From Lepidodermella squamata (taxonomy: Eukaryota; Animalia; Gastrotricha): a stretch of DNA of 20,025 nucleotides. The notes beneath the pieces are model-generated. The model had not been told where the DNA came from. It did no database searches and saw only the letters and a list, made by a program, of their open reading frames with translations. Position 1 is the first letter of the stretch. Every line of letters begins with the position of its first letter. A program made the position numbers and the translations under genes. Shown piece after piece: positions 1 through 18,926 of the stretch. Where the stretch lies: assembly GCA_047495785.1 (NCBI GenBank), contig JBLDXI010000098.1:1-20025 (forward strand), written 5' to 3'.

Positions 1-15
1 ACACATCTCGTGAGA

Positions 16-1273
16 GTACGGCAGTTGGAATCGTAGATGAAGCGGCGACGAGGATCGCAAATATTGAGAGGTATTGCCCGGCGACCAAGCTGCTTTGTTC
101 TCATCTTTTTGTTCGCAGGCCGTCTGTTCTTCCTTCAACAAATAATTCTCTCCACAGTAAAGAAATAAAGTAATATCGCGCTGCTATACGATTATTGAAA
201 CCTGGAATATATAAGAGCTGACAGGTGATGATGATGATCGCCCTCCGCTGGGTGGATTTGAAACAAGTACCTGATGACCATAAGGCACTCCCTTTGGCGG
301 CTTTTGGTGAACGCGCGGCTTAGACAAGTGCCGGTGCGCACCAATAAAGACACTTCAAAGCCGTTACAAATATAGGTCGCTTCAGCCTATCGCGAACTCA
401 CAAGCTACCGACAGGTGTAATAAACGTGACCTGGACACAAGGGAAGGGAACGATCGCGATCATTATTTCTCGGTAATAACATCGGCGGCATCTCGGAAAT
501 TCGCCCGTTCGAGCCGAAAAAATTGCCGCAACTGTTTTGTTTGTTATTTACGTGTGCCGTAAGTAAAGATGGAGTTGATGGCGATCGCAGACTGTATTAT
601 GCCGATCATCGGATATTAGTTGTTTTGTCGAAGAAAACAAAGGAAAATCTCGTTGTTATTCATGCCGACGGAATTTATTGCCTCACGCGCTGCCGAAGGC
701 TGGTTTTCGTGTTGTTATTGCCGTCATCGCCGAAAATTGGCGCGGTCGCAGTTCTACGACGGTCTTTCTTTACCTTTTCTTGCGTTAAATAATAAATTAG
801 ATCCTCAGTGCTCAGTGTACAGGCGCAGTATTTGCTAGTCGGGAGTCTGCTGCTGCTGCTTTGGCTGTGTCGTCGATCTCGCGGCGCGTGTTTTCTTTTA
901 TTTTGCTTTTCTTTTTGTCTTTTTCTTAGGTATTGTAATCCGCGGCGGCGCCCAAAGACCGAACCGTGAGCAAACCGGCAGCGCTCCAATCGATAGCGCG
1001 GCGCTCCCGACGTGCATACTTGATGACGTGTGTTTGTGGTAATGTGTATAAAAGGTGACGGGAAAAAGAACCACCACCAGCAGCAGAATGCTACGGTGCA
1101 TTCGCAACTCGATCTATTATTGCTTAAATTACTGTGGAGAGAATTATTTGTTGAAGGAAGAACAGACGGCCTGCGAACAAAAAGATGAGAACAAAGCAGC
1201 TTGGTCGCCGGGCAATACCTCTCAATATTTGCGATCCTCGTCGCCGCTTCATCTACGATTCCAACTGCCGTAC
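16..1273. repeat. Perfect 145-bp inverted repeat pair (16-160 and 1129-1273) with a 968-bp spacer
   Basis: 16-160 (GTACGGCAGTTGG...TCTCCACAGTAA) is the exact reverse complement of 1129-1273 by base-by-base comparison. Identity stops abruptly on both sides and no flanking target-site duplication is visible. Confidence 0.95.
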
Positions 1274-2252: not shown

Positions 2253-3607
2253 TTACCGTCTCGATGATCTGAAAATGGCAATACAAAAATTGAAACAAAT
2301 GGGTGAAAAAGCATTAGCTGGTCTCACTTGTGGTGATCATTTTTATCGATCGGTGACCGTGAGCGCGATCGATTTCGCTGATCGGGCGACCGGTCCCGTT
2401 GTCGGCGACGGCGATCTGCCGAGCCACGCGACGAAGCCGATGAAGAAGACGAGCTGCCAGAGCCTGAGGATGAGCCGGACGCAGATGAGCCCGACGAGCT
2501 CGAGTCCGAGTCGTCAGACGAACCCGAGTTAGAAGAAGCGGACGAGCCGGAGTCATTCCTGCGATGCGCATCATCCAGATCATGCAAAAGACAAAAGACA
2601 AAAACGTAAAAATGATGAAAGACCGAATTTTCAAAATGAAAGGCACAGATTGGACGATGGATTTTGTTTGATTTGCGCAATCTCTACAATCTCTACGGTC
2701 ACAAGCAGGCAATGTATTCGCACCGCTCCCGTGAAGACTTCGTCTTGGCATCCACCAGATCGGCCACGTCGTCTTCATCCAACAAGTTGTACTTGTCCAG
2801 ATCGGCGTCGTCACCATCATCATCATCATCGTCGTCCTCCTCTTCATTTTCCTCTTCGTCATCATGCTCGGCGTCCTTCTTATCGGCTACAGGACCCGCA
2901 GTAAGCTTCAATTAAAACAATAAGACATGGTTGATCTTTGATATAGGGTTATTTACTTGAGGTTTGTCGTTACTACTCTCGTGATCGTTGCCATTTTGAG
3001 AGCTGTCGTTGTCACCGCTTGCAGCTCCGCCGCGAAATTTCTTCTTGATTAGCCCAAACTAGATGAAAATATTAATTATGAAATTGGATTTAAGGGTTAA
3101 TTGGTATTATTTACTTCGTCATATTCGTCGTCAGATTCGTTGCGTTCCTTGTACTCGACAACGTCATCGCGGTCTTTATAGCCGCCACCGAGCCCAGTCC
3201 GATTTTCGGCTTTCGCCAACTTGGGCGTATTGCAAACGTTGCACTTGAAGCGTCGAGCCCAGTTGACGTTACCACAACTACATGGAGGAATCGATAATTA
3301 AGAAGCGCATTGAAAATGATGAGAAGAACCTTTTGCAAATCCAGTCATCAGGATTGAATAAACCGCCTGATTTCTCAGCTTGTTGTTTGCCAATTTCAAT
3401 TCCGGTTTTCTTGAATACCCAATCTTTCTGAAGCTCTGTTCCGCATTTGTTACATTTCGAACGGCTGCTGAAGTTTACATTGCCGCAGCGACCATTCGCT
3501 CTAAACGATGGAAACTTTGAAAAAATTGGAAGAAAACATTTAGCAGCGACTTACGTTTTACCTTGGCAAATCCAGTCACCTTCATTTGGCTTGACTTTTG
3601 CAGCCAT
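2253..3607 (-). CDS. ZRANB2: ZRANB2-like splicing regulator (two RanBP2-type zinc fingers, acidic region, Ser/Arg-rich tail); multi-exon, 3' end uncertain
   Basis: Manual splicing from ATG 3607 gives [38 protein letters not shown]...EIGKQQAEKSGGLFNPDDWICKSCGNVNWARRFKCNVCNTPKLAKAENRTGLGGGYKDRDDVVEYKERNESDDEYDEFGLIKKKFRG...DDADLDKYNL...RNRSRSRSP. This matches ZRANB2 motifs as I recall them (GDWIC, CGNVNWARR, RTGxGGG, YDEFG, DDADLxKYNL). Introns are GT-AG (first 3554-3501). The stop at 2253-2255 assumes a short last exon (KSSRR*). Confidence 0.9.
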
Positions 3608-3844
3608 TTCAAAAATTATTCTAAATTAGCGAGAAAATAAGCATTGCAGATTTAATTCAACTCCGTAATACAAAATTGAATTGCACCGATAGCTGATAAA
3701 TGATGGAAGCTCATAGTTCAGAAAAAATAAATGAAGATGCCGCAATTAGGCGGAGATTTTTTTTTAGCCTGAAAGGCATAATAAGATGATAAATAAGAAT
3801 GTCTCAGTTTGTAATAGGTCTCATTATCTCGAGCTCAAGCCGTT

Positions 3845-5260
3845 TCACAGCTTAGCAAGTTGACCGTTGAGTGTTTCGGCAAGAGCGTCCATGAATTCCT
3901 GGGTGTTGAGATATTCGCGTCGATCGACGGCAGTAGAACCAGGATTTTTGCACAAGGCCAAGTCCTTGGTCATTTTTCCATTCTCGACAGTAAGTACGCA
4001 TGAAGCCTCCAGCTGCTTGGCGAATTGCGCCAAATCAGCGTTGTTATCCAAAGCAGCGCGATGCGACAGAGCACGAGCCCATGCAACAACGGATGCGATA
4101 GGGTTCGACGAAGTCTCCTTTCCTTGTTGATGCAAGCGGTAATGACGAGTAATTGTGCCATGGGCTACACTTGTCACGATTAATGAAAGAGCTAAATTAA
4201 TACGCATAGCCTACCTGCTTCGGCAACTCGTGTGCGACCATCAGGGCAGATCAAAACCGAAGACATGAGACCCAATGAACCAAAGCCCTGTCGAGTTTAT
4301 ATTATAGCAAATCAGTAGCAGAATTGGCCTGAATCTTACCTGGGCAACCATGTCAGATTGAACATCCCCGTCGTAGTTTTTACAGGCCCAGACGAAGGAA
4401 CCCTCGCTTTTCAGGACATACGCAACCATGTCGTCGATCAAGCGGTGCTCGTATGTGAGACCGGGCCAGTCTTTGGCAACGGCATCAAAAATTGAACGGA
4501 AACGTCCATCATAGCTCTTTAAGATGGTGTTTTTCGTCGTGAAGTACAGTGGCATGTTGCGTTCGACGGCGAGACTGCAACATGACTTGGCGAAATCAGT
4601 AATCGAGGCATCCAAGTTGTACATCAGCAAAGCAACGCCCCCGGTGTTATCCGTTCCGGGCAACGGGAAATGAATTGATCGGAGTTCCTTCGATACGTTC
4701 GATCCATCGGGTTTCCACTGAATCGACAAAGTGCCGCTTTCACCGTGTGGCAAGAGCGCTTCCAATGCGGCATATTGGTCGGCGAAAGCGTGGCGACCTA
4801 CAATAATCGGGTGCTTCCAGTGGCTAACGACACGCGGAATGTTGGAGCAGATAATCGGCTCACGGAAAAGCGTTCCGCCGAGTTGGTTACGGATGGTTCC
4901 GTTCGGAGATTTATACATTGATTTCAAGCCAAACTCCTTTACCCGAGCTTCGTCTGGAAAATTGCAATAGATGCACAGTTATCATTGGCCACCACCGGCA
5001 AAGAAACACTTACCAGGGGTGATGGTAGCACATTTGACACCAACACCGCATTTCCTGACAGCCTCGACGTACTCCATAGTAACTTTATCGTCCGTTAAGT
5101 CGCGATTTTGAATAGAAAGGTCGAATGTTTGAAGTTCTATATCCAAATATGGCAGAATCAGCTTCTCCTTAATAAGGTCCCAGATAATTCGCGTCATCTC
5201 ATCTCCTTCAGCTTCTGCCACAACGCCGCAACGAATTTTACCGTTCGGAACGTCTCGCAT
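3845..5260 (-). CDS. IDH1: NADP-dependent isocitrate dehydrogenase, cytosolic/peroxisomal type, ~417 aa, 4 exons (5260-5014, 4953-4340, 4287-4215, 4164-3845)
   Basis: Motifs [90 protein letters not shown] and MTKDLA are all in frame after removing 60-, 52- and 50-bp GT-AG introns. An in-frame stop just upstream of ATG 5260 means no mitochondrial leader, and the C-terminus AKL is a PTS1 signal. Confidence 0.96.
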
Positions 5261-6355
5261 TTTCAATTAATGCTAAAAATCTAGGAGGAAACGCAATTGA
5301 GCTAAAAACGGCCTGAACTTGAAGACTTAGTTTTATGCAAGGGAAAAACAGTTATAAAATTAAACTAAATGCAAAACCGACTTCCTAAATCGATCAGATT
5401 ACTTCACCATATGATCCATTTAGTATCTATTTTCATAACTTAATTTTGAATATGGCAAATGGCGCAAAAGCCGATTACGCTGCGAACAGGTCGATGGCGT
5501 GGCCATGGGCTCACCTTTTTGTCCACCTATGCCATCATGCAAAACCTAGGGGAGTAACTCGAGGGAGACGATAGTACCTATATCCCAGCTATATCACATT
5601 TAGTCAAACAAGGTTGTCATTATCGCCGCGGCAAATCGTCTTTCGGCGGCGGACAATCCAGCAATGAAAGCAAACAACTGCTTCGGGCTGAAACGGAAGT
5701 CAGCCTAAGATTCTGGCCACCACGTGCTTATGCTTATGGCTCGCTATCAGAGGGTCAAGGTTAACGTTAACGTTAGGTTGGGGTTAGGTTGGGAGTGGGG
5801 TGCCCTCTGAGAGGGCACTTCTACCAACGAAATTGGAGGAGGCCAAAACGACAACGACTACATGACGCGGCAGCCGTAGATTTATCACAATTTATCATAC
5901 AGAGCTCGTACATTTGAGAGCCCTGGCAAGTAACACGAAAGAATCTATGCCTCTGTTGTGGACGCGGCGAAACCCTCGGAGCTCTGAGTGGAAATCCATC
6001 GCCCTAACTTGTTAATGATGTCATATTTGGCCTTTACGGCACGAATTACGGAATGGCTTTTCGGCACGCCTTTGAAAATGCTGATAGCCCGATCGTCGTT
6101 GGGAGCTGGGTGTCTTCAAATTAGCCAAGATCCAACCAAGATCAAAGATCGATGCCTGGATAGATAACGAACCCTGCCCTCCGCATCCCGCGTCGGAAAG
6201 CGCGCGCGCAAAAATTTAAATTAAAAAAATTAATTTGTCAATAATCATTTCAAAATTACTGAAACTTAAATATTTGGAAAAAATTATTAAATCTGTCAAT
6301 TTTTTATGGGTTTGCGTCGGTTTATTTTTCAAGTTTTTGTTTTTGGCGACTGAGT

Positions 6356-6486
6356 CCCTAGCAAACCCGTCCGGCGTTCAAACGGACAGTTTTCGTTCAG
6401 TTTCCGCACTGTGCACTGTTAGATCAACTGTTCGGAAACATGCAGTCTCCTGTCCGTTTGAACGCCTGAAACAGACAGTTTCCGGT
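6356..6486 (+). repeat. Transposon terminus with subterminal repeats (17-bp inverted pair 6373-6389/6450-6466; recurring CAGTTTYCG motif)
   Basis: GGCGTTCAAACGGACAG and CTGTCCGTTTGAACGCC are exact reverse complements. CAGTTTTCG/CAGTTTCCG occurs three times in about 100 bp. Subterminal direct and inverted motifs are typical of CACTA ends. Confidence 0.8.
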
Positions 6487-6932
6487 TAGTTTGGTTGAAA
6501 AAATTACAAAAATTGACCAAACCTCCGCTTACCGAAAATTCTCACGCCTGCTTTTCGGCCGACTTGGTAAAATTGTTGTACGAGCTATTTTGATTATATT
6601 TTGAAGATTATGATAAATAATTTAATAAATAATTAATTTCGCAGCTTTTGGGGATGTGCTTTGTTTGAAAATCTGCTAAGTCCGCGATGCATATGAACTG
6701 CTGACAGCCGCCTTAACCTTTCACTGCTAACTTAGTTGATTACATGCAGGTTGCTTCATGTTTTAAGTTGAAAAAATTAGTTTCTAGTTATTATGATCGT
6801 TCACGCCTAGTGTTTATGATTGCTCTGTACCTATGTCCATATGTTCATCTACCCATATTGCATGCTTTATGCCTTTAAGTGCAGCTTTTTCAAAGGCGCG
6901 TCTCATTTACCATCTATTTTGTTAAAATCTTC

Positions 6933-7350
6933 ATGAGCTCAAAGTCGTCTGACTCTGACGCTGAAGATGTGACCTCAAGCAGTTCAAGCTCCGAGGCTCC
7001 TCAGCCACCCATTAAAAAACGGTTAGCAAACTATTTTCAAATGTCTATAAGATTGAGAGTAGTCTTACGTTTATTCTAGCAAAGTTCCGGCTAAGGGGCG
7101 GTTGATACCCGCAGACTGTTTCTCATGTCAGTCATGCGATTTTTACTCCGACGAATGGTTGACGGTGCAGGCACATGAGCGAAAAGAACATAATAGTAGT
7201 TTTGTGTGCCCTGTATGCGATATGAGTTTCAAGTCCAAGTATGAGCTTGAGAAGCATGAAACTAAGCGACATCCGCTAGCATTCCCGCCAAAACCTAAGA
7301 AACCTAAGGAAAAATCCAAAAAATCCGCAAAGGGACATATAAAGGATTGA
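6933..7350 (+). CDS. Transposon-encoded small protein with two C2H2 zinc fingers and a Lys-rich tail (~119 aa; exons 6933-7021, 7080-7350)
   Basis: MSSKSSDSDAED...PIKKR joins through a 58-bp GT-AG intron in frame to KVPAKGR..FSCQSCDFYSDEWLTVQAHERKEH..FVCPVCDMSFKSKYELEKHETKRH..PKPKKPKEKSKKSAK. No GT donor follows the second finger, so it appears to end at its own stop. Confidence 0.75.
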
Positions 7351-7458
7351 TATGATTTCTTGCCACGAACGATACATTGAACCATTTGTCTTATTGATTA
7401 CTTAATATGTTTTAGGAAATTACTTTTCATTGTTCAACTGTACCCTGTGCGTTTGCTT

Positions 7459-10234
7459 ATGCCGCCAAAAGAGGCTCGAAAAGAGATCGATTTGTTACTC
7501 CAACAGCTCGGCGGAGCTGAAGAAGAAGAAGAAGAAGAAGAAGAAGAAGAAGAATCCGAATCGGACGTTGGGTTGTCGGCTACTCAACGAAGAATAGCTT
7601 CAGCTACGTTAATTAGGTCGTTGGAATGTGGTGAGAGGCCAACAAACGTTCAAACCACGCATTCGGTAATTGCTGATAGGCCGTCTACCTCATCCGAGTC
7701 GTATGAGCCTGCTCCTGAGTTTGCTGAAGCATCCTATACGGCGCATGGTGAACAATGGCCCATCAGTGAGGAAGAATCAGATGAAATCGACCTGCCTGGT
7801 CAATCAGGGATGGACGATGAGTACGAAGTGCTTTCACAGTCATCTTGCGACTCATTCCCAAGTGATTGGGAGGTAAACCAGTCTGATTTCGAAATGGACG
7901 AGGCCGATGAGGCCGACGAAGCCCCACGAACTTCAGTTCCAGCCGGCGCGAAAACAAACATCACTGACACGGCGGATCGTTTTGTTCATGCTGAAATAGT
8001 AAAACAGCCCAATCCAGACCCGAAGATCAACAGCTATTCGCCCATGTCGGTTCTTCGTGCGCTTGAAATTGATCATGGCCTTGCGCAGGCAGGCTTGGAT
8101 CTTGTAACGAAGGGCTTTCGGGAGCTTGCCAAAGGTGATGCTGCGAAGCTGGCCTCGATTCCGTCCTCGTTGAAATCTTACAGAAAAATGCTGACTGGCA
8201 TGGGTGACGTGGTTCTTCCTCAAATTTTGCAAAGTTTATGCCCGTCATGTTTTGTGCAAGTTGATGCTGCAAAGAAATGCGGGCAATGTGGAACAACATT
8301 ATCAACGGCTAGTATGGGGGAGATCATCGTGCCCTCGTTAGCCTGGCAACTATTGGTAATATTGAGTGACTTCATCGACGCTGGCGTTGTACCTCTCACT
8401 GATGTTCACAATCTCGATCTTCAGCTACAAATAAATTTTGATGGTACTACCTTGTCAAAGCGAGCGGGAACTGGAACAAACGTGTGGCCTTTGCTGGCAA
8501 CCATCAAGAATCTGCCTGAATATGCAAGGTATTTAAAAACATAGAAGAAGAAAACGGTGATTAGTGTGTTAATTATGTTTCAGGTACAAGCCGGAGAATA
8601 TGCTCCTCCTGGGGATTTGGCAGGGACCTACCAGTCCCAAGTACCAACAATTCCTCGATCTTTGTCTCTCGAACACAGTCGCAAATTTTGAGGTCAAGAA
8701 GAGACTGGTTACGAAAAAGGGGGCAGAGGTAGACTTTACTGTATGGCTCTTCTCGCTCATTGCCGATGCGCCTGCAAAATGCGACTGTCTCAATATACGC
8801 AGCTTTCACGCCGAGTATGGCTGTCCTTTCTGCTTCCTCAAAGGAGATCATCTTTTTGGCAGCCGTCGATATCGATTCGTCGAGGATTCCGAGTTTGATT
8901 TGCGTCCACCCGATGAAATAAACAAAGTCGGCCCTGAAATCGATAGAACTGGAGTCGTAGTGCATGGTATGAAAGGCTCCTGTGTGCTCTGTAAACGCCG
9001 CATGTTGCTTCCTCGAGATGCACCGGTCGACCACCTCCATTGCATCTGTGAAGGCGTAGCTAAGCAGGAGTTGCGCAGTTCTATTCAGTACGACGACATT
9101 TTACCGATTCGAATTCGTAATTACATCGCCCGAATACTTCGAGAAATACAAGTTCCCAGGCAGATGCAGTCGGTTAGGCTGAAAGTATTTGGCGAGACCG
9201 CGGCGAGCCAGTTCAAAGGGAAACATATGAAGTTTTGGGTTGGCTACGTCCGGGTCCCCGTCCTTGCGCGATTCATGCCAGATACATACTTTCTACTCAC
9301 CGTTTGCCTGTCTCTTGCTTTTCGCCTGTTGATCGAATTCGATGAGGAAGATGCTGACAAAAAACTCAAGGCGATACAACAATCTCGGTCTCTTCTGAAC
9401 GAATATCGCCGTTTCTTCCCAATACTGTACGGTGGCGTGAAAACGGAGACCTACAATTTGCATACAGTGGGACATTTACCGGCTCAAGCCGAGCGTTTCG
9501 GGCGAATCGACAGCTTTTCGGCTTTTCCTCACGAAGGGTTGATTGGATGGTTGAAGCACGTGTACGTAGGAACGCAACACCAGATACATCGTATGTTGGT
9601 GGCCCTTCATCGACGTCAGTTGAAAGGTGACAGGGACTACAGCAAGCGCCTTACTGTTGTGCTCTCCAACGCGACTCGCCCGGATTCGGAGCAGCAAGCT
9701 ATCCTGAACTCTGTCTGTGTCAATGGCGGTTATACTATTTTTACTACTGCCTACTACAAATCTCAGCGTTTTGATGGGCTATGGTTGAAATTCGGCACAA
9801 AGCGACGGTTACCTCGGTCGTTCGCCGTTGAGTTCAAACTGGATGACGGTACTTCAGCGTGTGGAGAAATTCTCGGTTTCGTGAGAAATGCAGCGACTCC
9901 CATGGTTGTTGATAAGGCATTAATTCGACGCTATGTCTGTCTTCCTGATGCTGGTGTCATTTTGCAGCGACTTTCCTCTCTGTGTGGTTCTACCGAGCTG
10001 GCAACTGAAGCCAAGACGCATCTTGCGAATGCCATCGGCAACGTTTTATCGGATGATTTCGCTAGGAACATCTTCCGCTCCTACACTATTTCTAATTTGA
10101 GAGATAATGCCGGTTATTGTTTGATTGATTTGGAAAAAATCTCATCAAAACTAGTTGTTATCCAACGTCGCCCCTGCAATGACAACTATATATGCGACGC
10201 CATTCCTTGGGGAATTGGGGCTGACCTTTATTAA
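7459..10234 (+). CDS. CACTA/EnSpm-type (CMC) DDE transposase, ~906 aa (exons 7459-8528, 8584-10234)
   Basis: A 55-bp GT-AG intron joins the two ORFs in frame (LPEYARYKPENMLLLGIWQG). CMC motifs present: CPSC...CGQC, QINFDG (D1), VWPL, LIADAPA (D2), GCPFC, VDHLHCICEG, YNLHTVGHL and SAFPHE (E). The N-terminus is acidic and starts MPPK. No stops or frameshifts. Confidence 0.92.
7519..7554 (+). repeat. (GAA)12 microsatellite encoding poly-Glu in the transposase N-terminus; mirror copy at 15901-15936
   Basis: Read directly; the unit count is 12 in both arms. Confidence 0.95.
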
Positions 10235-10298
10235 ATTTTTTACTACGAAAGTTTTTACTGCCTTGTTAATTATCACATGATATTTTATAGATTTTTAA

Positions 10299-12001
10299 AT
10301 GAGTAATAATCCTGTTCGTCAACAAAATCCCAACCTGGTTATTCGGAGCGCGTGCCCGAATTTGATAGTTGCTTTAACCTCAAAAGCGAGAGCTCAAGGA
10401 GCCAATGCCCAAGCTATTTTGGCGGCGTATGGGCAACCTTCGGCCCATCTCAATATGCAGGGTGCTAACCCACAGCGATCGTCAAATCAGACCGGCCGAG
10501 GTGGAAACAGCTGTTATTCCGAACAGCCGCCCGCAGCGGTTAGTCAGGCCGCCGCTTCTGGCTTCGTAACCCAACCAACGTCCCAACCAAACTCGCAAAA
10601 ACCAAATCAGCGCAATGCTGTGGGCTTCGGCCAACAGTCAGTCCGACAGACTACTCAGTCCGCCGCTCAGTCCGCCGCTCAGTCCGCCGCTCCATCCGGC
10701 TCTCAAGCAAGCTTTCAGCGTGGCACTACGTCTCGTGCCCTGTCCGGCGCCCAGTCCACTTCTCAGCTCGATGCCCCGTCCACTTCTCAGTCCGATGCCC
10801 CGTCCACTTCTCAGTCCGATGCCCCGTCCTCTTCTCAGTCTAGTGCTGAGTCTGGTCAAGTGACACTTAAGGTGAATTTAGATTTGGAATATGAGATTGG
10901 AAATGCGTTATATTTTTTCTGTAGCAAATCAAAGTCCAACTTGACCAGGGTTTTGGCAATCAGAAAAAGGTGAGTAATTCGGCCGAAATTAGTTAGCTTA
11001 TTACTCATTACATGGTGAATTTTCCAGTTTTTGATGTACTTGAAAAAGCACGGCGTCAAGGAAGCTGAGATATCGGAACCTTTTGTAATTTGTGCAGAAA
11101 AGCCGCATGTTGTATGTTTATATATCTCATGCTATTATCGATTAAAAATTGGATTTTCTTTCAAGTACATAAACAACATAAACTGGACTGCTCGTATAGA
11201 ATCAAAATTTGGCACATCAAATGACCCCATTGAGGTGGGAAAATTTGTTGCAGATATATTCTTACCTGTTAGTGTATCTGTTACCTGTTTATGATCACTG
11301 AAAACAGAAATGCTTTTGTTCAACAGGATGATTATCTCGCGCTTTATCTAGTTGAGCCAAAAAGGTGGCGAGCGGCTTCAAAAATAGTCGCCGATCAAAC
11401 TCTCGTCAACGGCGTGAAACGTAAGTTAGCACAACATTCAGTCAGTAGTTAGTATATCTCTGTCTTTTCAGTTTTCTTAATGTTGTTGTTTCGTCATCTG
11501 ACCTCTGGTCAGATGACTGATTTGTGGAAAAGGCTGCGCAAAGTCTTAGCGGACCACGGCGACGATATTCGACGAAAGATTCGCCGCTCAAATCCTGATG
11601 ATGCCAGACTCCACGGCCCGGCGCCATTCCCTTATCAACACGCCTATTATACTGAGTATAATGTCCCGGATTTTATGGAGTTTCGTCCCGCATTAGACGA
11701 TCCGGAGATGGCGGCAATTGTTGCCAAGCTACCGCTGATGCCGCCGCTTGACGACGATACTGTGAACGCCTTAAATCAGTTGAAGAATGTGATGCAACAG
11801 CAGCAAGATCCAGCGCCACAGGGCCAACCGCAGGGCGAGCAGCCGCAGGATTTGAGCGGCGAATCTTTCGTCGAATATCGTCGCCGTGGTCCGCTAAGAC
11901 TTTGCGCAGCCTTTTCCACAAATCAGTCATCTGACCAGAGGTCAGATGACGAAACAACAACATTAAGAAAACTGAAAAGACAGAGATATACTAACTACTG
12001 A
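10299..12001 (+). CDS. Transposon accessory (TnpA/ORF2-like) protein with S/Q-rich N-terminus and BEN-like domain; native C-terminus replaced by read-through into the opposite arm (~475 aa)
   Basis: Six exons (10299-10871, 10925-10969, 11028-11111, 11166-11267, 11327-11420, 11472-12001) with five 51-59-bp GT-AG introns keep one open frame: ...DPIEVGKFVADIFLPDDYLALY...KIVADQTLVNGVKLFLMLLF...MTDLWKRLRKVLADHGDDIRRK... The BEN assignment is by eye from the helix pattern. After 11845 the frame reads antisense arm sequence. Confidence 0.7.
10656..10840 (+). repeat. Coding tandem repeats in the accessory gene: 12-bp CAGTCCGCCGCT x3 (QSAA) and 24-bp unit x3.5 (STSQxDAP)
   Basis: 12-mer at 10656-10691 (four copies in the other arm, 12752-12799); 24-mer TCCACTTCTCAGTCCGATGCCCCG from 10755. 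Confidence 0.92.
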
Positions 12002-13156
12002 CTGAATGTTGTGCTAACTTACGTTTCACGCCGTTGACGAGAGTTTGATCGGCGACTATTTTTGAAGCCGCTCGCCACCTTTTTGGCTCAACTAGATAAA
12101 GCGCGAGATAATCATCCTGTTGAACAAAAGCATTTCTGTTTTCAGTGATCATAAACAGGTAACAGATACACTAACAGGTAAGAATATATCTGCAACAAAT
12201 TTTCCCACCTCAATGGGGTCATTTGATGTGCCAAATTTTGATTCTATACGAGCAGTCCAGTTTATGTTGTTTATGTACTTGAAAGAAAATCCAATTTTTA
12301 ATCGATAATAGCATGAGATATATAAACATACAACATGCGGCTTTTCTGCACAAATTACAAAAGGTTCCGATATCTCAGCTTCCTTGACGCCGTGCTTTTT
12401 CAAGTACATCAAAAACTGGAAAATTCACCATGTAATGAGTAATAAGCTAACTAATTTCGGCCGAATTACTCACCTTTTTCTGATTGCCAAAACCCTGGTC
12501 AAGTTGGACTTTGATTTGCTACAGAAAAAATATAACGCATTTCCAATCTCATATTCCAAATCTAAATTCACCTTAAGTGTCACTTGACCAGACTCAGCAC
12601 TAGACTGAGAAGAGGACGGGGCATCGGACTGAGAAGTGGACGGGGCATCGGACTGAGAAGTGGACGGGGCATCGAGCTGAGAAGTGGACTGGGCGCCGGA
12701 CAGGGCACGAGACGTAGTGCCACGCTGAAAGCTTGCTTGAGAGCCGGATGGAGCGGCGGACTGAGCGGCGGACTGAGCGGCGGACTGAGCGGCGGACTGA
12801 GTAGTCTGTCGGACTGACTGTTGGCCGAAGCCCACAGCATTGCGCTGATTTGGTTTTTGCGAGTTTGGTTGGGACGTTGGTTGGGTTACGAAGCCAGAAG
12901 CGGCGGCCTGACTAACCGCTGCGGGCGGCTGTTCGGAATAACAGCTGTTTCCACCTCGGCCGGTCTGATTTGACGATCGCTGTGGGTTAGCACCCTGCAT
13001 ATTGAGATGGGCCGAAGGTTGCCCATACGCCGCCAAAATAGCTTGGGCATTGGCTCCTTGAGCTCTCGCTTTTGAGGTTAAAGCAACTATCAAATTCGGG
13101 CACGCGCTCCGAATAACCAGGTTGGGATTTTGTTGACGAACAGGATTATTACTCAT
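11673..13156 (-). CDS. Second copy of the accessory BEN-like gene, more truncated (~402 aa), with its tail read from the antisense strand of the spacer
   Basis: Mirror of 10299-11597 with one extra QSAA unit. After ...IRRSNP it continues AAARPAVGP... to a stop at 11673. Confidence 0.65.
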
Positions 13157-13220
13157 TTAAAAATCTATAAAATATCATGTGATAATTAACAAGGCAGTAA
13201 AAACTTTCGTAGTAAAAAAT

Positions 13221-15996
13221 TTAATAAAGGTCAGCCCCAATTCCCCAAGGAATGGCGTCGCATATATAGTTGTCATTGCAGGGGCGACGTTGGATAACAA
13301 CTAGTTTTGATGAGATTTTTTCCAAATCAATCAAACAATAACCGGCATTATCTCTCAAATTAGAAATAGTGTAGGAGCGGAAGATGTTCCTAGCGAAATC
13401 ATCCGATAAAACGTTGCCGATGGCATTCGCAAGATGCGTCTTGGCTTCAGTTGCCAGCTCGGTAGAACCACACAGAGAGGAAAGTCGCTGCAAAATGACA
13501 CCAGCATCAGGAAGACAGACATAGCGTCGAATTAATGCCTTATCAACAACCATGGGAGTCGCTGCATTTCTCACGAAACCGAGAATTTCTCCACACGCTG
13601 AAGTACCGTCATCCAGTTTGAACTCAACGGCGAACGACCGAGGTAACCGTCGCTTTGTGCCGAATTTCAACCATAGCCCATCAAAACGCTGAGATTTGTA
13701 GTAGGCAGTAGTAAAAATAGTATAACCGCCATTGACACAGACAGAGTTCAGGATAGCTTGCTGCTCCGAATCCGGGCGAGTCGCGTTGGAGAGCACAACA
13801 GTAAGGCGCTTGCTGTAGTCCCTGTCACCTTTCAACTGACGTCGATGAAGGGCCACCAACATACGATGTATCTGGTGTTGCGTTCCTACGTACACGTGCT
13901 TCAACCATCCAATCAACCCTTCGTGAGGAAAAGCCGAAAAGCTGTCGATTCGCCCGAAACGCTCGGCTTGAGCCGGTAAATGTCCCACTGTATGCAAATT
14001 GTAGGTCTCCGTTTTCACGCCACCGTACAGTATTGGGAAGAAACGGCGATATTCGTTCAGAAGAGACCGAGATTGTTGTATCGCCTTGAGTTTTTTGTCA
14101 GCATCTTCCTCATCGAATTCGATCAACAGGCGAAAAGCAAGAGACAGGCAAACGGTGAGTAGAAAGTATGTATCTGGCATGAATCGCGCAAGGACGGGGA
14201 CCCGGACGTAGCCAACCCAAAACTTCATATGTTTCCCTTTGAACTGGCTCGCCGCGGTCTCGCCAAATACTTTCAGCCTAACCGACTGCATCTGCCTGGG
14301 AACTTGTATTTCTCGAAGTATTCGGGCGATGTAATTACGAATTCGAATCGGTAAAATGTCGTCGTACTGAATAGAACTGCGCAACTCCTGCTTAGCTACG
14401 CCTTCACAGATGCAATGGAGGTGGTCGACCGGTGCATCTCGAGGAAGCAACATGCGGCGTTTACAGAGCACACAGGAGCCTTTCATACCATGCACTACGA
14501 CTCCAGTTCTATCGATTTCAGGGCCGACTTTGTTTATTTCATCGGGTGGACGCAAATCAAACTCGGAATCCTCGACGAATCGATATCGACGGCTGCCAAA
14601 AAGATGATCTCCTTTGAGGAAGCAGAAAGGACAGCCATACTCGGCGTGAAAGCTGCGTATATTGAGACAGTCGCATTTTGCAGGCGCATCGGCAATGAGC
14701 GAGAAGAGCCATACAGTAAAGTCTACCTCTGCCCCCTTTTTCGTAACCAGTCTCTTCTTGACCTCAAAATTTGCGACTGTGTTCGAGAGACAAAGATCGA
14801 GGAATTGTTGGTACTTGGGACTGGTAGGTCCCTGCCAAATCCCCAGGAGGAGCATATTCTCCGGCTTGTACCTGAAACATAATTAACACACTAATCACCG
14901 TTTTCTTCTTCTATGTTTTTAAATACCTTGCATATTCAGGCAGATTCTTGATGGTTGCCAGCAAAGGCCACACGTTTGTTCCAGTTCCCGCTCGCTTTGA
15001 CAAGGTAGTACCATCAAAATTTATTTGTAGCTGAAGATCGAGATTGTGAACATCAGTGAGAGGTACAACGCCAGCGTCGATGAAGTCACTCAATATTACC
15101 AATAGTTGCCAGGCTAACGAGGGCACGATGATCTCCCCCATACTAGCCGTTGATAATGTTGTTCCACATTGCCCGCATTTCTTTGCAGCATCAACTTGCA
15201 CAAAACATGACGGGCATAAACTTTGCAAAATTTGAGGAAGAACCACGTCACCCATGCCAGTCAGCATTTTTCTGTAAGATTTCAACGAGGACGGAATCGA
15301 GGCCAGCTTCGCAGCATCACCTTTGGCAAGCTCCCGAAAGCCCTTCGTTACAAGATCCAAGCCTGCCTGCGCAAGGCCATGATCAATTTCAAGCGCACGA
15401 AGAACCGACATGGGCGAATAGCTGTTGATCTTCGGGTCTGGATTGGGCTGTTTTACTATTTCAGCATGAACAAAACGATCCGCCGTGTCAGTGATGTTTG
15501 TTTTCGCGCCGGCTGGAACTGAAGTTCGTGGGGCTTCGTCGGCCTCATCGGCCTCGTCCATTTCGAAATCAGACTGGTTTACCTCCCAATCACTTGGGAA
15601 TGAGTCGCAAGATGACTGTGAAAGCACTTCGTACTCATCGTCCATCCCTGATTGACCAGGCAGGTCGATTTCATCTGATTCTTCCTCACTGATGGGCCAT
15701 TGTTCACCATGCGCCGTATAGGATGCTTCAGCAAACTCAGGAGCAGGCTCATACGACTCGGATGAGGTAGACGGCCTATCAGCAATTACCGAATGCGTGG
15801 TTTGAACGTTTGTTGGCCTCTCACCACATTCCAACGACCTAATTAACGTAGCTGAAGCTATTCTTCGTTGAGTAGCCGACAACCCAACGTCCGATTCGGA
15901 TTCTTCTTCTTCTTCTTCTTCTTCTTCTTCTTCTTCAGCTCCGCCGAGCTGTTGGAGTAACAAATCGATCTCTTTTCGAGCCTCTTTCGGCGGCAT
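13221..15996 (-). CDS. Second copy of the CACTA/EnSpm transposase (exons 15996-14927, 14871-13221)
   Basis: Reverse-complement copy of 7459-10234 with an identical translated sequence; one synonymous difference seen (7467 A versus 15988 C, i.e. G on the minus strand). Confidence 0.92.
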
Positions 15997-16104
15997 AAGC
16001 AAACGCACAGGGTACAGTTGAACAATGAAAAGTAATTTCCTAAAACATATTAAGTAATCAATAAGACAAATGGTTCAATGTATCGTTCGTGGCAAGAAAT
16101 CATA

Positions 16105-16522
16105 TCAATCCTTTATATGTCCCTTTGCGGATTTTTTGGATTTTTCCTTAGGTTTCTTAGGTTTTGGCGGGAATGCTAGCGGATGTCGCTTAGTTTCATG
16201 CTTCTCAAGCTCATACTTGGACTTGAAACTCATATCGCATACAGGGCACACAAAACTACTATTATGTTCTTTTCGCTCATGTGCCTGCACCGTCAACCAT
16301 TCGTCGGAGTAAAAATCGCATGACTGACATGAGAAACAGTCTGCGGGTATCAACCGCCCCTTAGCCGGAACTTTGCTAGAATAAACGTAAGACTACTCTC
16401 AATCTTATAGACATTTGAAAATAGTTTGCTAACCGTTTTTTAATGGGTGGCTGAGGAGCCTCGGAGCTTGAACTGCTTGAGGTCACATCTTCAGCGTCAG
16501 AGTCAGACGACTTTGAGCTCAT
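16105..16522 (-). CDS. Second copy of the 2xC2H2 zinc-finger gene (exons 16522-16434, 16375-16105)
   Basis: Mirror of 6933-7350; identical translations in the ORF track. Confidence 0.75.
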
Positions 16523-16968
16523 GAAGATTTTAACAAAATAGATGGTAAATGAGACGCGCCTTTGAAAAAGCTGCACTTAAAGGCATAAAGCATGCAATAT
16601 GGGTAGATGAACATATGGACATAGGTACAGAGCAATCATAAACACTAGGCGTGAACGATCATAATAACTAGAAACTAATTTTTTCAACTTAAAACATGAA
16701 GCAACCTGCATGTAATCAACTAAGTTAGCAGTGAAAGGTTAAGGCGGCTGTCAGCAGTTCATATGCATCGCGGACTTAGCAGATTTTCAAACAAAGCACA
16801 TCCCCAAAAGCTGCGAAATTAATTATTTATTAAATTATTTATCATAATCTTCAAAATATAATCAAAATAGCTCGTACAACAATTTTACCAAGTCGGCCGA
16901 AAAGCAGGCGTGAGAATTTTCGGTAAGCGGAGGTTTGGTCAATTTTTGTAATTTTTTCAACCAAACTA

Positions 16969-17099
16969 ACCGGAAACTGTCTGTTTCAGGCGTTCAAACG
17001 GACAGGAGACTGCATGTTTCCGAACAGTTGATCTAACAGTGCACAGTGCGGAAACTGAACGAAAACTGTCCGTTTGAACGCCGGACGGGTTTGCTAGGG
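16969..17099 (-). repeat. Second copy of the same transposon terminus with subterminal repeats
   Basis: Reverse complement of 6356-6486, ending GTTTGCTAGGG. Confidence 0.8.
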
Positions 17100-18302
17100 A
17101 AAGCATGCTGCAAACGGGTGTCACGTGACAAAGGTGATACATTTGTTTTTGACATTTATTTTAAAATGTGATTTATTCGTCTAAGTATTAAATGATGTTT
17201 TCTTAACAGTCTTTGATCAGTAATATTCCACAATAATTAAGTTTTTATGAGGGGTTAGTGTTGGTTATCGAAATCTATGAAAAAATGAACCGAATACGGC
17301 TTTTTTCTTGAAAAAAGAAGGAATGAGTGTGTATGCGCGTGAGTTGTTGGATGCTTTTGCGTAAGCTTTCATACCTTCCGCGACCGTGACTGATAGATGA
17401 ATGTTCCGAGTCGAAGCACTTCTCATGGCTGTGAATCAGTATTCTAGATACACTATGATCTCATGTATAATGTGTTGGTGCCCTGACTTTGACTTGGATT
17501 TGACTAATGACTTGGATGGATTGGATGGAGTTCAGATGCTGAAAGATGCTTTCAGGGCAAAGCTTTTACCGAGGAAGCGCCTCACAGTAATATGTTTTAT
17601 ATCGCCGTCTCTAGTGAGAATGGGCAAGCAACGTTTTTTATGATAAGTATTCATCGATTCATCGAATAAGTATAGGAATATATCAGCTGTTACGTCTTCG
17701 CTTGCATTCAATTGATAGACTGGTTTATCGGTGCTTATTAGGTTACTCTTTATACTGTAGTGTGGAGATTTGTCGCGTTTTATCCTTTTCCTGTCATTCC
17801 AGCCGAGCTCCTTTGGTGCTTTGCCAAACACCAAATAATTACTTACCTCTCTTAAGTCTTAAGATTGAAATCTTTCATTATTTCGCAACATGCAACATTA
17901 ATACGTGTATTGAGTCACTAGTCGGTAATAGTGGTCAATAATTGTTTTATTACCATGATAGTGAGTTTTGGTAGTTTATCCACTTGTTTGCATTATTGCA
18001 CTACCATGAAATGAGGAGTGGCGCTAAGTTATAGCATCAATTCGAACTCTGAAATGCGGAGCAGTCATTGAAATCTATCATATCTAGATGCGTTTTCATG
18101 TATTTTTCCACTTGCTTTTTGCTTAGTTGCTGTGTTATGAAGGTTTTCCTCATTTACTGCCACCTACGATATGCGGGTTAACTTCAGTTTGAACCTTTTC
18201 AGCTTCATATACGACCTGAGTTATCTTTACTTAGCATTGCCCGTAACTCTGTTTTGTATTGACTATCTTGAAATTCTAGGTTAACATTGTTTTCTGTTAT
18301 AA

Positions 18303-18926
18303 ATGGCTCAAAGGAAATTGGCTGGCAAGCCAGCCCCGCGGAAACGCGCTCAACGTGCGACATCCAACGTCTTTGCCATGTTTGACCAGGCTCAAATCCA
18401 AGAGTTCAAAGAGGCGTTTAACATGATTGATCAGAACCATGATGGGTTCATTGATAAAGAAGATTTACACGAAATGCTTGCTTCTATGGGTTCGCAACCG
18501 TTATATTAAAACAATACAAACAATATTAGTGCTTTTTGCAGGTAAAAATCCCCAAGACGATCAGCTCGAGCAGATGCTCTCTGAAGCGCCAGGTCAAATC
18601 AATTTCACCATGTTTTTGACCATGTTTGGTGAAAAACTAAATGGAACTGACCCTGAGGATGTGATAAAGAACGCCTTTGCGTGCTTTGATGAAGACGGAT
18701 CTGGGCGAATATCCGAAGAAAAGCTACGAGAAGTTCTCACTTCCATGGGTGATCGCTGGAGCGATGAGCAGGTATATCAATATATCCAGCTTTGACTGTT
18801 TGATCGCGTTTCATTTTCTAGGTTGACGAAATGTTCCGCGATGCTCCCATTCGCGACGGCAAGTTCAATTACATGGAATTCGTCAAGATTCTCAAGTACG
18901 GAAAGAAGGATGCCGATGACCAATAA
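18303..18926 (+). CDS. Non-muscle myosin II regulatory light chain (sqh/mlc-4/MYL12 family), ~173 aa, exons 18303-18489, 18542-18771, 18822-18926
   Basis: [42 protein letters not shown] (Thr/Ser phosphosite plus EF-hand), [27 protein letters not shown] and [25 protein letters not shown]. The 52- and 50-bp GT-AG introns preserve frame. Confidence 0.96.

Follow-up and report, generated by a model that had tools for sequence, protein, structure and literature searches.

A near-perfect 10.7-kb palindrome in a Lepidodermella squamata contig is most likely an amplification fold-back inside an ordinary, transcribed CMC-type transposon

The window, that is, the whole stretch of 20,025 nucleotides of Lepidodermella squamata DNA that was analysed, contains two long inverted arms around a short spacer, and each arm carries three genes that all run in one direction, the third of them being interrupted by the junction in both arms (Table 1). 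The boundaries, obtained with a repeat finder and a global alignment, agree exactly with what an earlier note had read from the letters, namely inverted arms of about 5.25 kb, a 248-bp spacer, limits at CCC and GGG and an absent opposite end: the window has one transposon end only, and the other is missing from the palindrome. In the global alignment, the only differences between the arms are a synonymous SNP (A at 7467 versus 15988, C on the forward strand) and an additional copy of a 12-bp tandem unit, at 12790-12801 (3.2 versus 4.2 copies). The left arm also has a subterminal 20-bp inverted pair (6370-6389 and 6450-6469), and the right arm holds the stub of gene 3 (11846-13156), the transposase gene (13221-16008) and the zinc-finger gene (to about 16522). 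Both arms contain an identical two-exon transposase frame, so that the further claim of an intact transposase in each arm also holds.

Table 1. Features of the window (X1 is the DNA sequencing run introduced in the text)
Feature	Positions	Strand	Description
PacBio barcoded-adapter remnant	1-17	+	Barcode 1003 with the overhang T of the adapter; occurs once in the window
Second fold-back	16-1273	.	16-160 and 1129-1273 are perfect inverted repeats around a loop of 968 bp; the barcode truncates the fold-back
Left arm of palindrome	6356-11597	+	5242 bp; 5' part of a CMC-type DNA transposon; starts CCC
Gene 1, small C2H2 zinc-finger protein	6933-7350	+	Predicted; start codon and first exon from sequence
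Gene 2, CMC-clade DDE transposase	7447-10234	+	Two exons; 55-bp in-phase intron 8529-8583
Gene 3	10299-11849	+	Six exons; frame open to the junction; truncated in the window
Spacer between arms	11598-11845	+	248 bp; regular continuation of the last exon of gene 3, i.e., the fold-back loop
Fold-back junction	11846-11849	.	CAGG, shared by the returning arm and the real continuation; complementary to 11594-11597
Right arm of palindrome	11846-17099	-	5254 bp; inverted copy of the 5' part in the left arm; ends GGG
Right flank	17100-17250	+	Two alleles in X1

Three sequencing runs from three studies contain the stretch, and the contigs of two of them, X1 and X2, were mapped to 11451-17450; the data are Logan contigs and not raw reads, and rare variants are dropped from them. 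X1 is DNA, as its retained introns show, and it contains 92% of the stretch; X2, which comes from another study and sample (2015), is RNA, since six GT-AG introns are skipped in it.

Gene 1 matches the Pfam family zf-C2H2 (E 1e-6, 7102-7347). For the transposase and gene 3, searches and alignments were made exon by exon. The transposase, whose intron is spliced in X2, displays the motifs FDG, DAPA, CxxC, DxxH, HxxxH and E, and although a Pfam search of its exons gave no direct match, a search with its second exon found 2138 relatives (E<=1e-3), the best of which (E to 2e-28) carry PF02992 (Transposase_21), PF06869 (DUF1258) and PF13960 (DUF4218). Among the aligned relatives, D332 of exon 1 is conserved in all 29, and in exon 2 the conserved residues are D56 (39 of 40), C75 and C78 (40 of 40), H288 and H292 (39 of 39) and E312 (40 of 40). 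Since the marks of CMC/CMCT transposases are a DDE core with C(2)C and H(3-4)H motifs (PMC12730594), gene 2 is, as judged from its sequence, a CMC/CMCT transposase gene by motif as well as by family similarity, and the assignment to CMC made in the earlier note is borne out by the nearly invariant D, D, CxxC, HxxxH and E and by the PF02992 and PF06869 relatives. The closest proteins are only 24-33% identical, and relatives match both PF02992 and PF06869, which fits EnSpm or Mirage; an exact look-up of the transposase reading frame in public assemblies returned no record. Gene 3, with no family match exon by exon in Pfam and Atlas, has its five introns spliced in contig 8 of X2, and the complete gene extends beyond 11849 within a PQGEQ repeat.

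The animal carries an ordinary, one-way, three-gene CMC-type transposon, which is transcribed and spliced and continues past 11849, its 3' end lying further on than the loose end there. X1 also contains internal deletion derivatives of it (in left-arm coordinates, 6438 joined to 10093 and 7327 joined to 10049), such as a normal, active family would produce, and the true element most likely transposes by the usual cut-and-paste route, with short TIRs at its ends.

Does the one-way element coexist with a palindromic form? A palindrome on even one haplotype would cause contigs to break at 11597 and 11849 and would give rise to a junction contig. In X1, however, arm and spacer lie unbranched in contig 1, which ends at 11849 in a loose end of 119 bases; in X2 they are likewise found in one unbranched contig with the identical continuation after 11849, and this continuation extends the frame of gene 3 as further PQGEQ repeats. 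No junction contig was found in X1 or X2, and 11850-11992 has no contig coverage. Depth in the bins 11651-11850 and 11851-12050 falls from 111.2 to 32.4 in X1 and from 48.3 to 6.8 in X2, values that in both runs equal the share of a single contig to the decimal, so that no contig crosses the junction. The "opposite strands" joints at 11451/11993 and 11472/12023 reflect nothing more than a contig that runs on into the mirrored arm where the mapped stretch ends. A weaker check points the same way: a homozygous palindrome predicts an arm-to-spacer ratio of 2:1, and in X1 the spacer has the depth of the arm (as a weak measure, 112-126 in the element core against 121 summed over the two right-flank alleles). 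The earlier note had named as a refutation that no native long reads cross the 11845/11846 junction, or that it appears in amplified libraries only, and the junction is indeed missing from X1 and X2, as far as contigs show. An old palindrome maintained by gene conversion was also considered and rejected, given that the junction is missing from both runs.

The sequence around the junction suggests how it arose. Four bases of exact microhomology lie at the turn, 8 of the last 11 bases pair, and the loop measures about 250 bp (248-252). In MDA, over 85% of chimeras are inverted, with priming on 2-21 nt (PMC1855051), and in inverted chimeras distances peak at 250-300 nt and overlaps are most often 5-8 nt long (PMC9984789). 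During strand-displacement synthesis by phi29, a displaced 3' end with the CAGG at 11849 would mis-prime on the complementary 11594-11597, 250 bp back, and would then copy the element in reverse. In a second step, either the assembler would overlap the returning arm with reads of another insertion of this young element, situated beside the gene for myosin light chain, or priming by the 3' end would take place directly on that second copy; on this view, the SNP and the 12-bp unit would distinguish one insertion from the other. This second step, assembler overlap or intermolecular switch, is suggested by the exit of the contig into the other flank at the exact element end. A simple single-molecule fold-back was rejected, since it would mirror the left flank.

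Further indications come from the start of the window. Its first 17 bases match the end of bcAd1003 at 17/17 positions (sequence from bioRxiv 10.1101/2023.02.19.526140), and the second fold-back follows, which implies that the piece starts with the untrimmed end of a read from a folded-back molecule. The assembly probably is, on circumstantial grounds, the one obtained from a single animal by REPLI-g MDA, HiFi sequencing and hifiasm, beside C. elegans, with 157 contigs, 43.3% GC and 3% heterozygosity (PMC11660948). These grounds are a run dated 2024 with a second run of 101 million letters, from another organism, in its study, earlier runs dated 2014 and 2015, about 44% GC, 147 pieces and divergent haplotypes. 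Counting against chimerism, the authors' own screen reported no chimeric contig, though its criterion was read ends on different contigs (PMC11660948). With the same kit type, about one third of the reads from tardigrades were palindromic (PMC13265396).

Taken together, the lack of a junction contig, the colinear continuation, the microhomology and loop size, the barcode with its second fold-back and the absence of a TSD make it very likely that the palindrome results from a fold-back during MDA, within a young but otherwise ordinary CMC transposon of three genes, and from a join to a second insertion; the option of an artefact, one of several in the earlier note, is thereby supported by contigs that lack the junction and by the one-way form in DNA and RNA. 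The likeness to MDA inverted chimeras (PMC1855051, PMC9984789, PMC13265396) covers the inverted repeat, the loop of 248-252 bp, the few bases of microhomology where the strand turns, the repeated occurrence of fold-backs on a single piece, the absence from independent data and the probably amplified library from a tiny animal, and among the contigs the colinear form is present and the junction absent. Unlike in those chimeras, the returning arm ends here at a transposon end and enters another locus, which needs a repeat-mediated join. Some points count against a fold-back made during amplification: the overlap of 4 nt is slightly under the reported mode of 5-8, natural fold-backs also use microhomology, the join to another flank calls for an additional step, contigs drop rare variants, and X1 is probably, rather than certainly, the source run of the assembly. 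Still, the palindrome is very probably absent from the living animal; it is most likely not a real feature, and the jumping gene beneath it is real and transcribed.

The flanks bear on how the two arms came together. Arm symmetry stops at CCC...GGG plus one further T/A pair (6355/17100), and the element itself ends in GGG, since another flank of the same end in X1 begins with T. No TSD of 2-10 bp was found at symmetric end offsets from -4 to +4; the left flank ends GT and the right flank starts AA, so that the 10.7-kb unit lacks the 2-5 bp TSD of a CMC element. The left flank carries an IDH gene, whose exon gave best hits of no more than 60% and so said nothing about the species, and the right one a myosin light chain gene. 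In X1, one right-flank allele (loose end at 17101) is preceded by DNA unlike the element or the left flank of the window, and at 17099 a loose end leads from the element into a third flank. When the loose ends were searched in the window, only that at 11849 matched (23/30, in the PQGEQ repeat) and the others stayed at chance level, so the idea that the empty allele of the right flank is the left flank was rejected. Because the TSD is missing and the right-flank allele has a different upstream neighbour, the two flanks are not halves of one insertion site, and the right arm probably derives from a second insertion of the element.

These data leave hardly any room for a self-mobile palindromic element, in which the 5.25-kb arms would be giant TIRs and the whole would transpose as a 10.7-kb unit. 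The identical, correct transposon ends facing outwards and the two intact transposase frames would suit such an element. Nevertheless, it is extremely unlikely and largely refuted, given that there is no TSD, that DNA other than the left flank precedes the empty right-flank allele, that the junction is missing from both runs, that gene 3 is broken at the centre, and that core coverage about equals the two flank alleles together, with no room for a multi-copy family (depth being a weak measure). The earlier suggestion of a mobile unit with whole-cassette TIRs thus fails for want of a TSD, of flanks that are halves of one empty site and of a junction in any run. A different route to an artefact would have the inverted copies truly close together, with their 3' ends and the DNA between them, and a chimeric molecule that skipped the loop, the flanks being truly linked and only the centre false. 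It would explain, with no misjoin by the assembler, why the contig leaves into a different flank, and most MDA chimeras are inversions inside one molecule and within 10 kb (PMC1855051); it is nonetheless very unlikely, since nothing places both flanks on one chromosome segment and a single continuation is seen at 11849.

Could the palindrome be a real rearrangement? Two nearby inverted copies (after a local hop) might have lost the intervening DNA by microhomology deletion, or alternative transposition with re-replication might have fused two 5' ends. The outcome would be a locus like Mu killer: transcripts of gene 3 converging from both arms would pair into a hairpin RNA and silence the family. 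Two templates fit the fact that the flanks differ and that a SNP and 12 bp set the arms apart, and long palindromes can be under-amplified. Such loci do exist in maize, as Mu killer and the Ac composite insertions show. Mu killer comprises two TIRA ends with two incomplete copies of mudrA (PMC3440606), and so resembles the palindrome in its two outward-facing copies of one element end and its inverted partial gene copies. However, it is a genetically proven heritable locus with arms of about 1.3 kb and a truncated transposase (PMC3440606), whereas the arms here have 5.25 kb with whole transposases and a junction missing from DNA and RNA runs; in X2, which is another sample, gene 3 continues normally and there is no fold-back contig, contrary to what a silencer of the Mu-killer type would show. 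Ac composite insertions, formed by sister-chromatid transposition, carry inverted 5' ends and keep an 8-bp TSD (bioRxiv 10.1101/2020.01.07.897926); they share with the palindrome the inverted 5'-end repeats fused at the centre, yet they are hAT insertions and proven heritable loci, unlike the palindrome here, which has no TSD. A literature search for sister-chromatid inverted duplications of CACTA elements found none.

The contigs weigh against a real rearrangement as well. There is no junction contig in X1 though the window's own right-flank allele has good coverage there, spacer and arm lie within one unbranched contig, a heterozygous palindrome predicts a junction of about haplotype depth and a branch at 11597, the TSD retained by Ac composite insertions is lacking, and the barcode and second fold-back stand on the same piece. 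A real rearrangement is therefore quite unlikely, and the option of aberrant transposition is not supported, as the non-palindromic progenitor is the only form in DNA and RNA contigs. There is accordingly a slim chance that the junction is real and was lost from the contigs, in which case the locus would be a newly formed, Mu-killer-like derivative of an active CMC transposon, with two complete transposases, outward-facing ends, the capacity to form a hairpin RNA and possibly the ability to move as a unit. If the junction were real, it would be a rare animal case of a transposon becoming its own silencer, or a new construction of a mobile unit. As an artefact, it means that near-perfect kilobase palindromes in this assembly, especially those with barcode remnants, need a junction check before any biological reading.

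Beyond the palindrome, the three-gene CMC element is itself new, and its clade is already known. With the CMC/CMCT clade (CACTA/EnSpm, Mirage and Chapaev; PMC12730594) it shares the DDE core, the C(2)C and H(3-4)H motifs and the presence of extra genes. Its end, of which only one is seen, is CCC, in contrast to the commoner CA of the clade, and internal deletion derivatives are likewise common to both (PMC12730594).

The piece opens with a remnant of PacBio barcode 1003, which is the mark of an untrimmed read end, and immediately after it starts a second fold-back that, judging from its sequence, is probably a further chimera of the phi29 whole-genome amplification (MDA).

Features of the window outside and at the end of the palindrome
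Feature	Position	Strand	Remarks
PacBio barcode 1003 plus T	1-17		remnant at start of piece
Second fold-back	16-1273		exact arms, 145 bp each; loop 968 bp
ZRANB2-resembling spliced gene	2324-3608	-	read by eye only
NADP isocitrate dehydrogenase gene	3845-5266	-	
Subterminal inverted pair, 20 bp	6370-6469		inside element's 5' end; encloses additional hairpin
Myosin regulatory light chain gene	18303-18925	+	EF-hand matches

Within the element, the subterminal pair offers candidate transposase binding sites, and the DNA run X1 contains, besides several diverged subterminal variants of the transposon family, two internal deletion derivatives (6438-10093 and 7327-10049 in left-arm coordinates), one of them with a 10-base filler. 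Between the end of the transposase and gene 3 (10299-10460; mirror 13000-13156), the depth of the RNA run X2 drops almost to zero, and the X2 contig of gene 3 begins at mirror position 10402, shortly after an AG at 10397-10398; such a pattern would be compatible with an operon-like transcript being processed by trans-splicing, although contigs are unable to reveal where transcripts start.

As for the host genes, the isocitrate dehydrogenase reaches at most 60% identity to database proteins, pointing to a lineage that is either fast-evolving or sparsely sampled, and the ZRANB2-like gene appears, by eye, to encode a protein that has two zinc fingers of the RanBP2 type and a tail rich in RS. The right flank (17100-17202) is represented in X1 by two alleles differing at 6 of about 75 bases, and carries a perfect 12-bp palindrome, TGTCACGTGACA, near 17119-17130.
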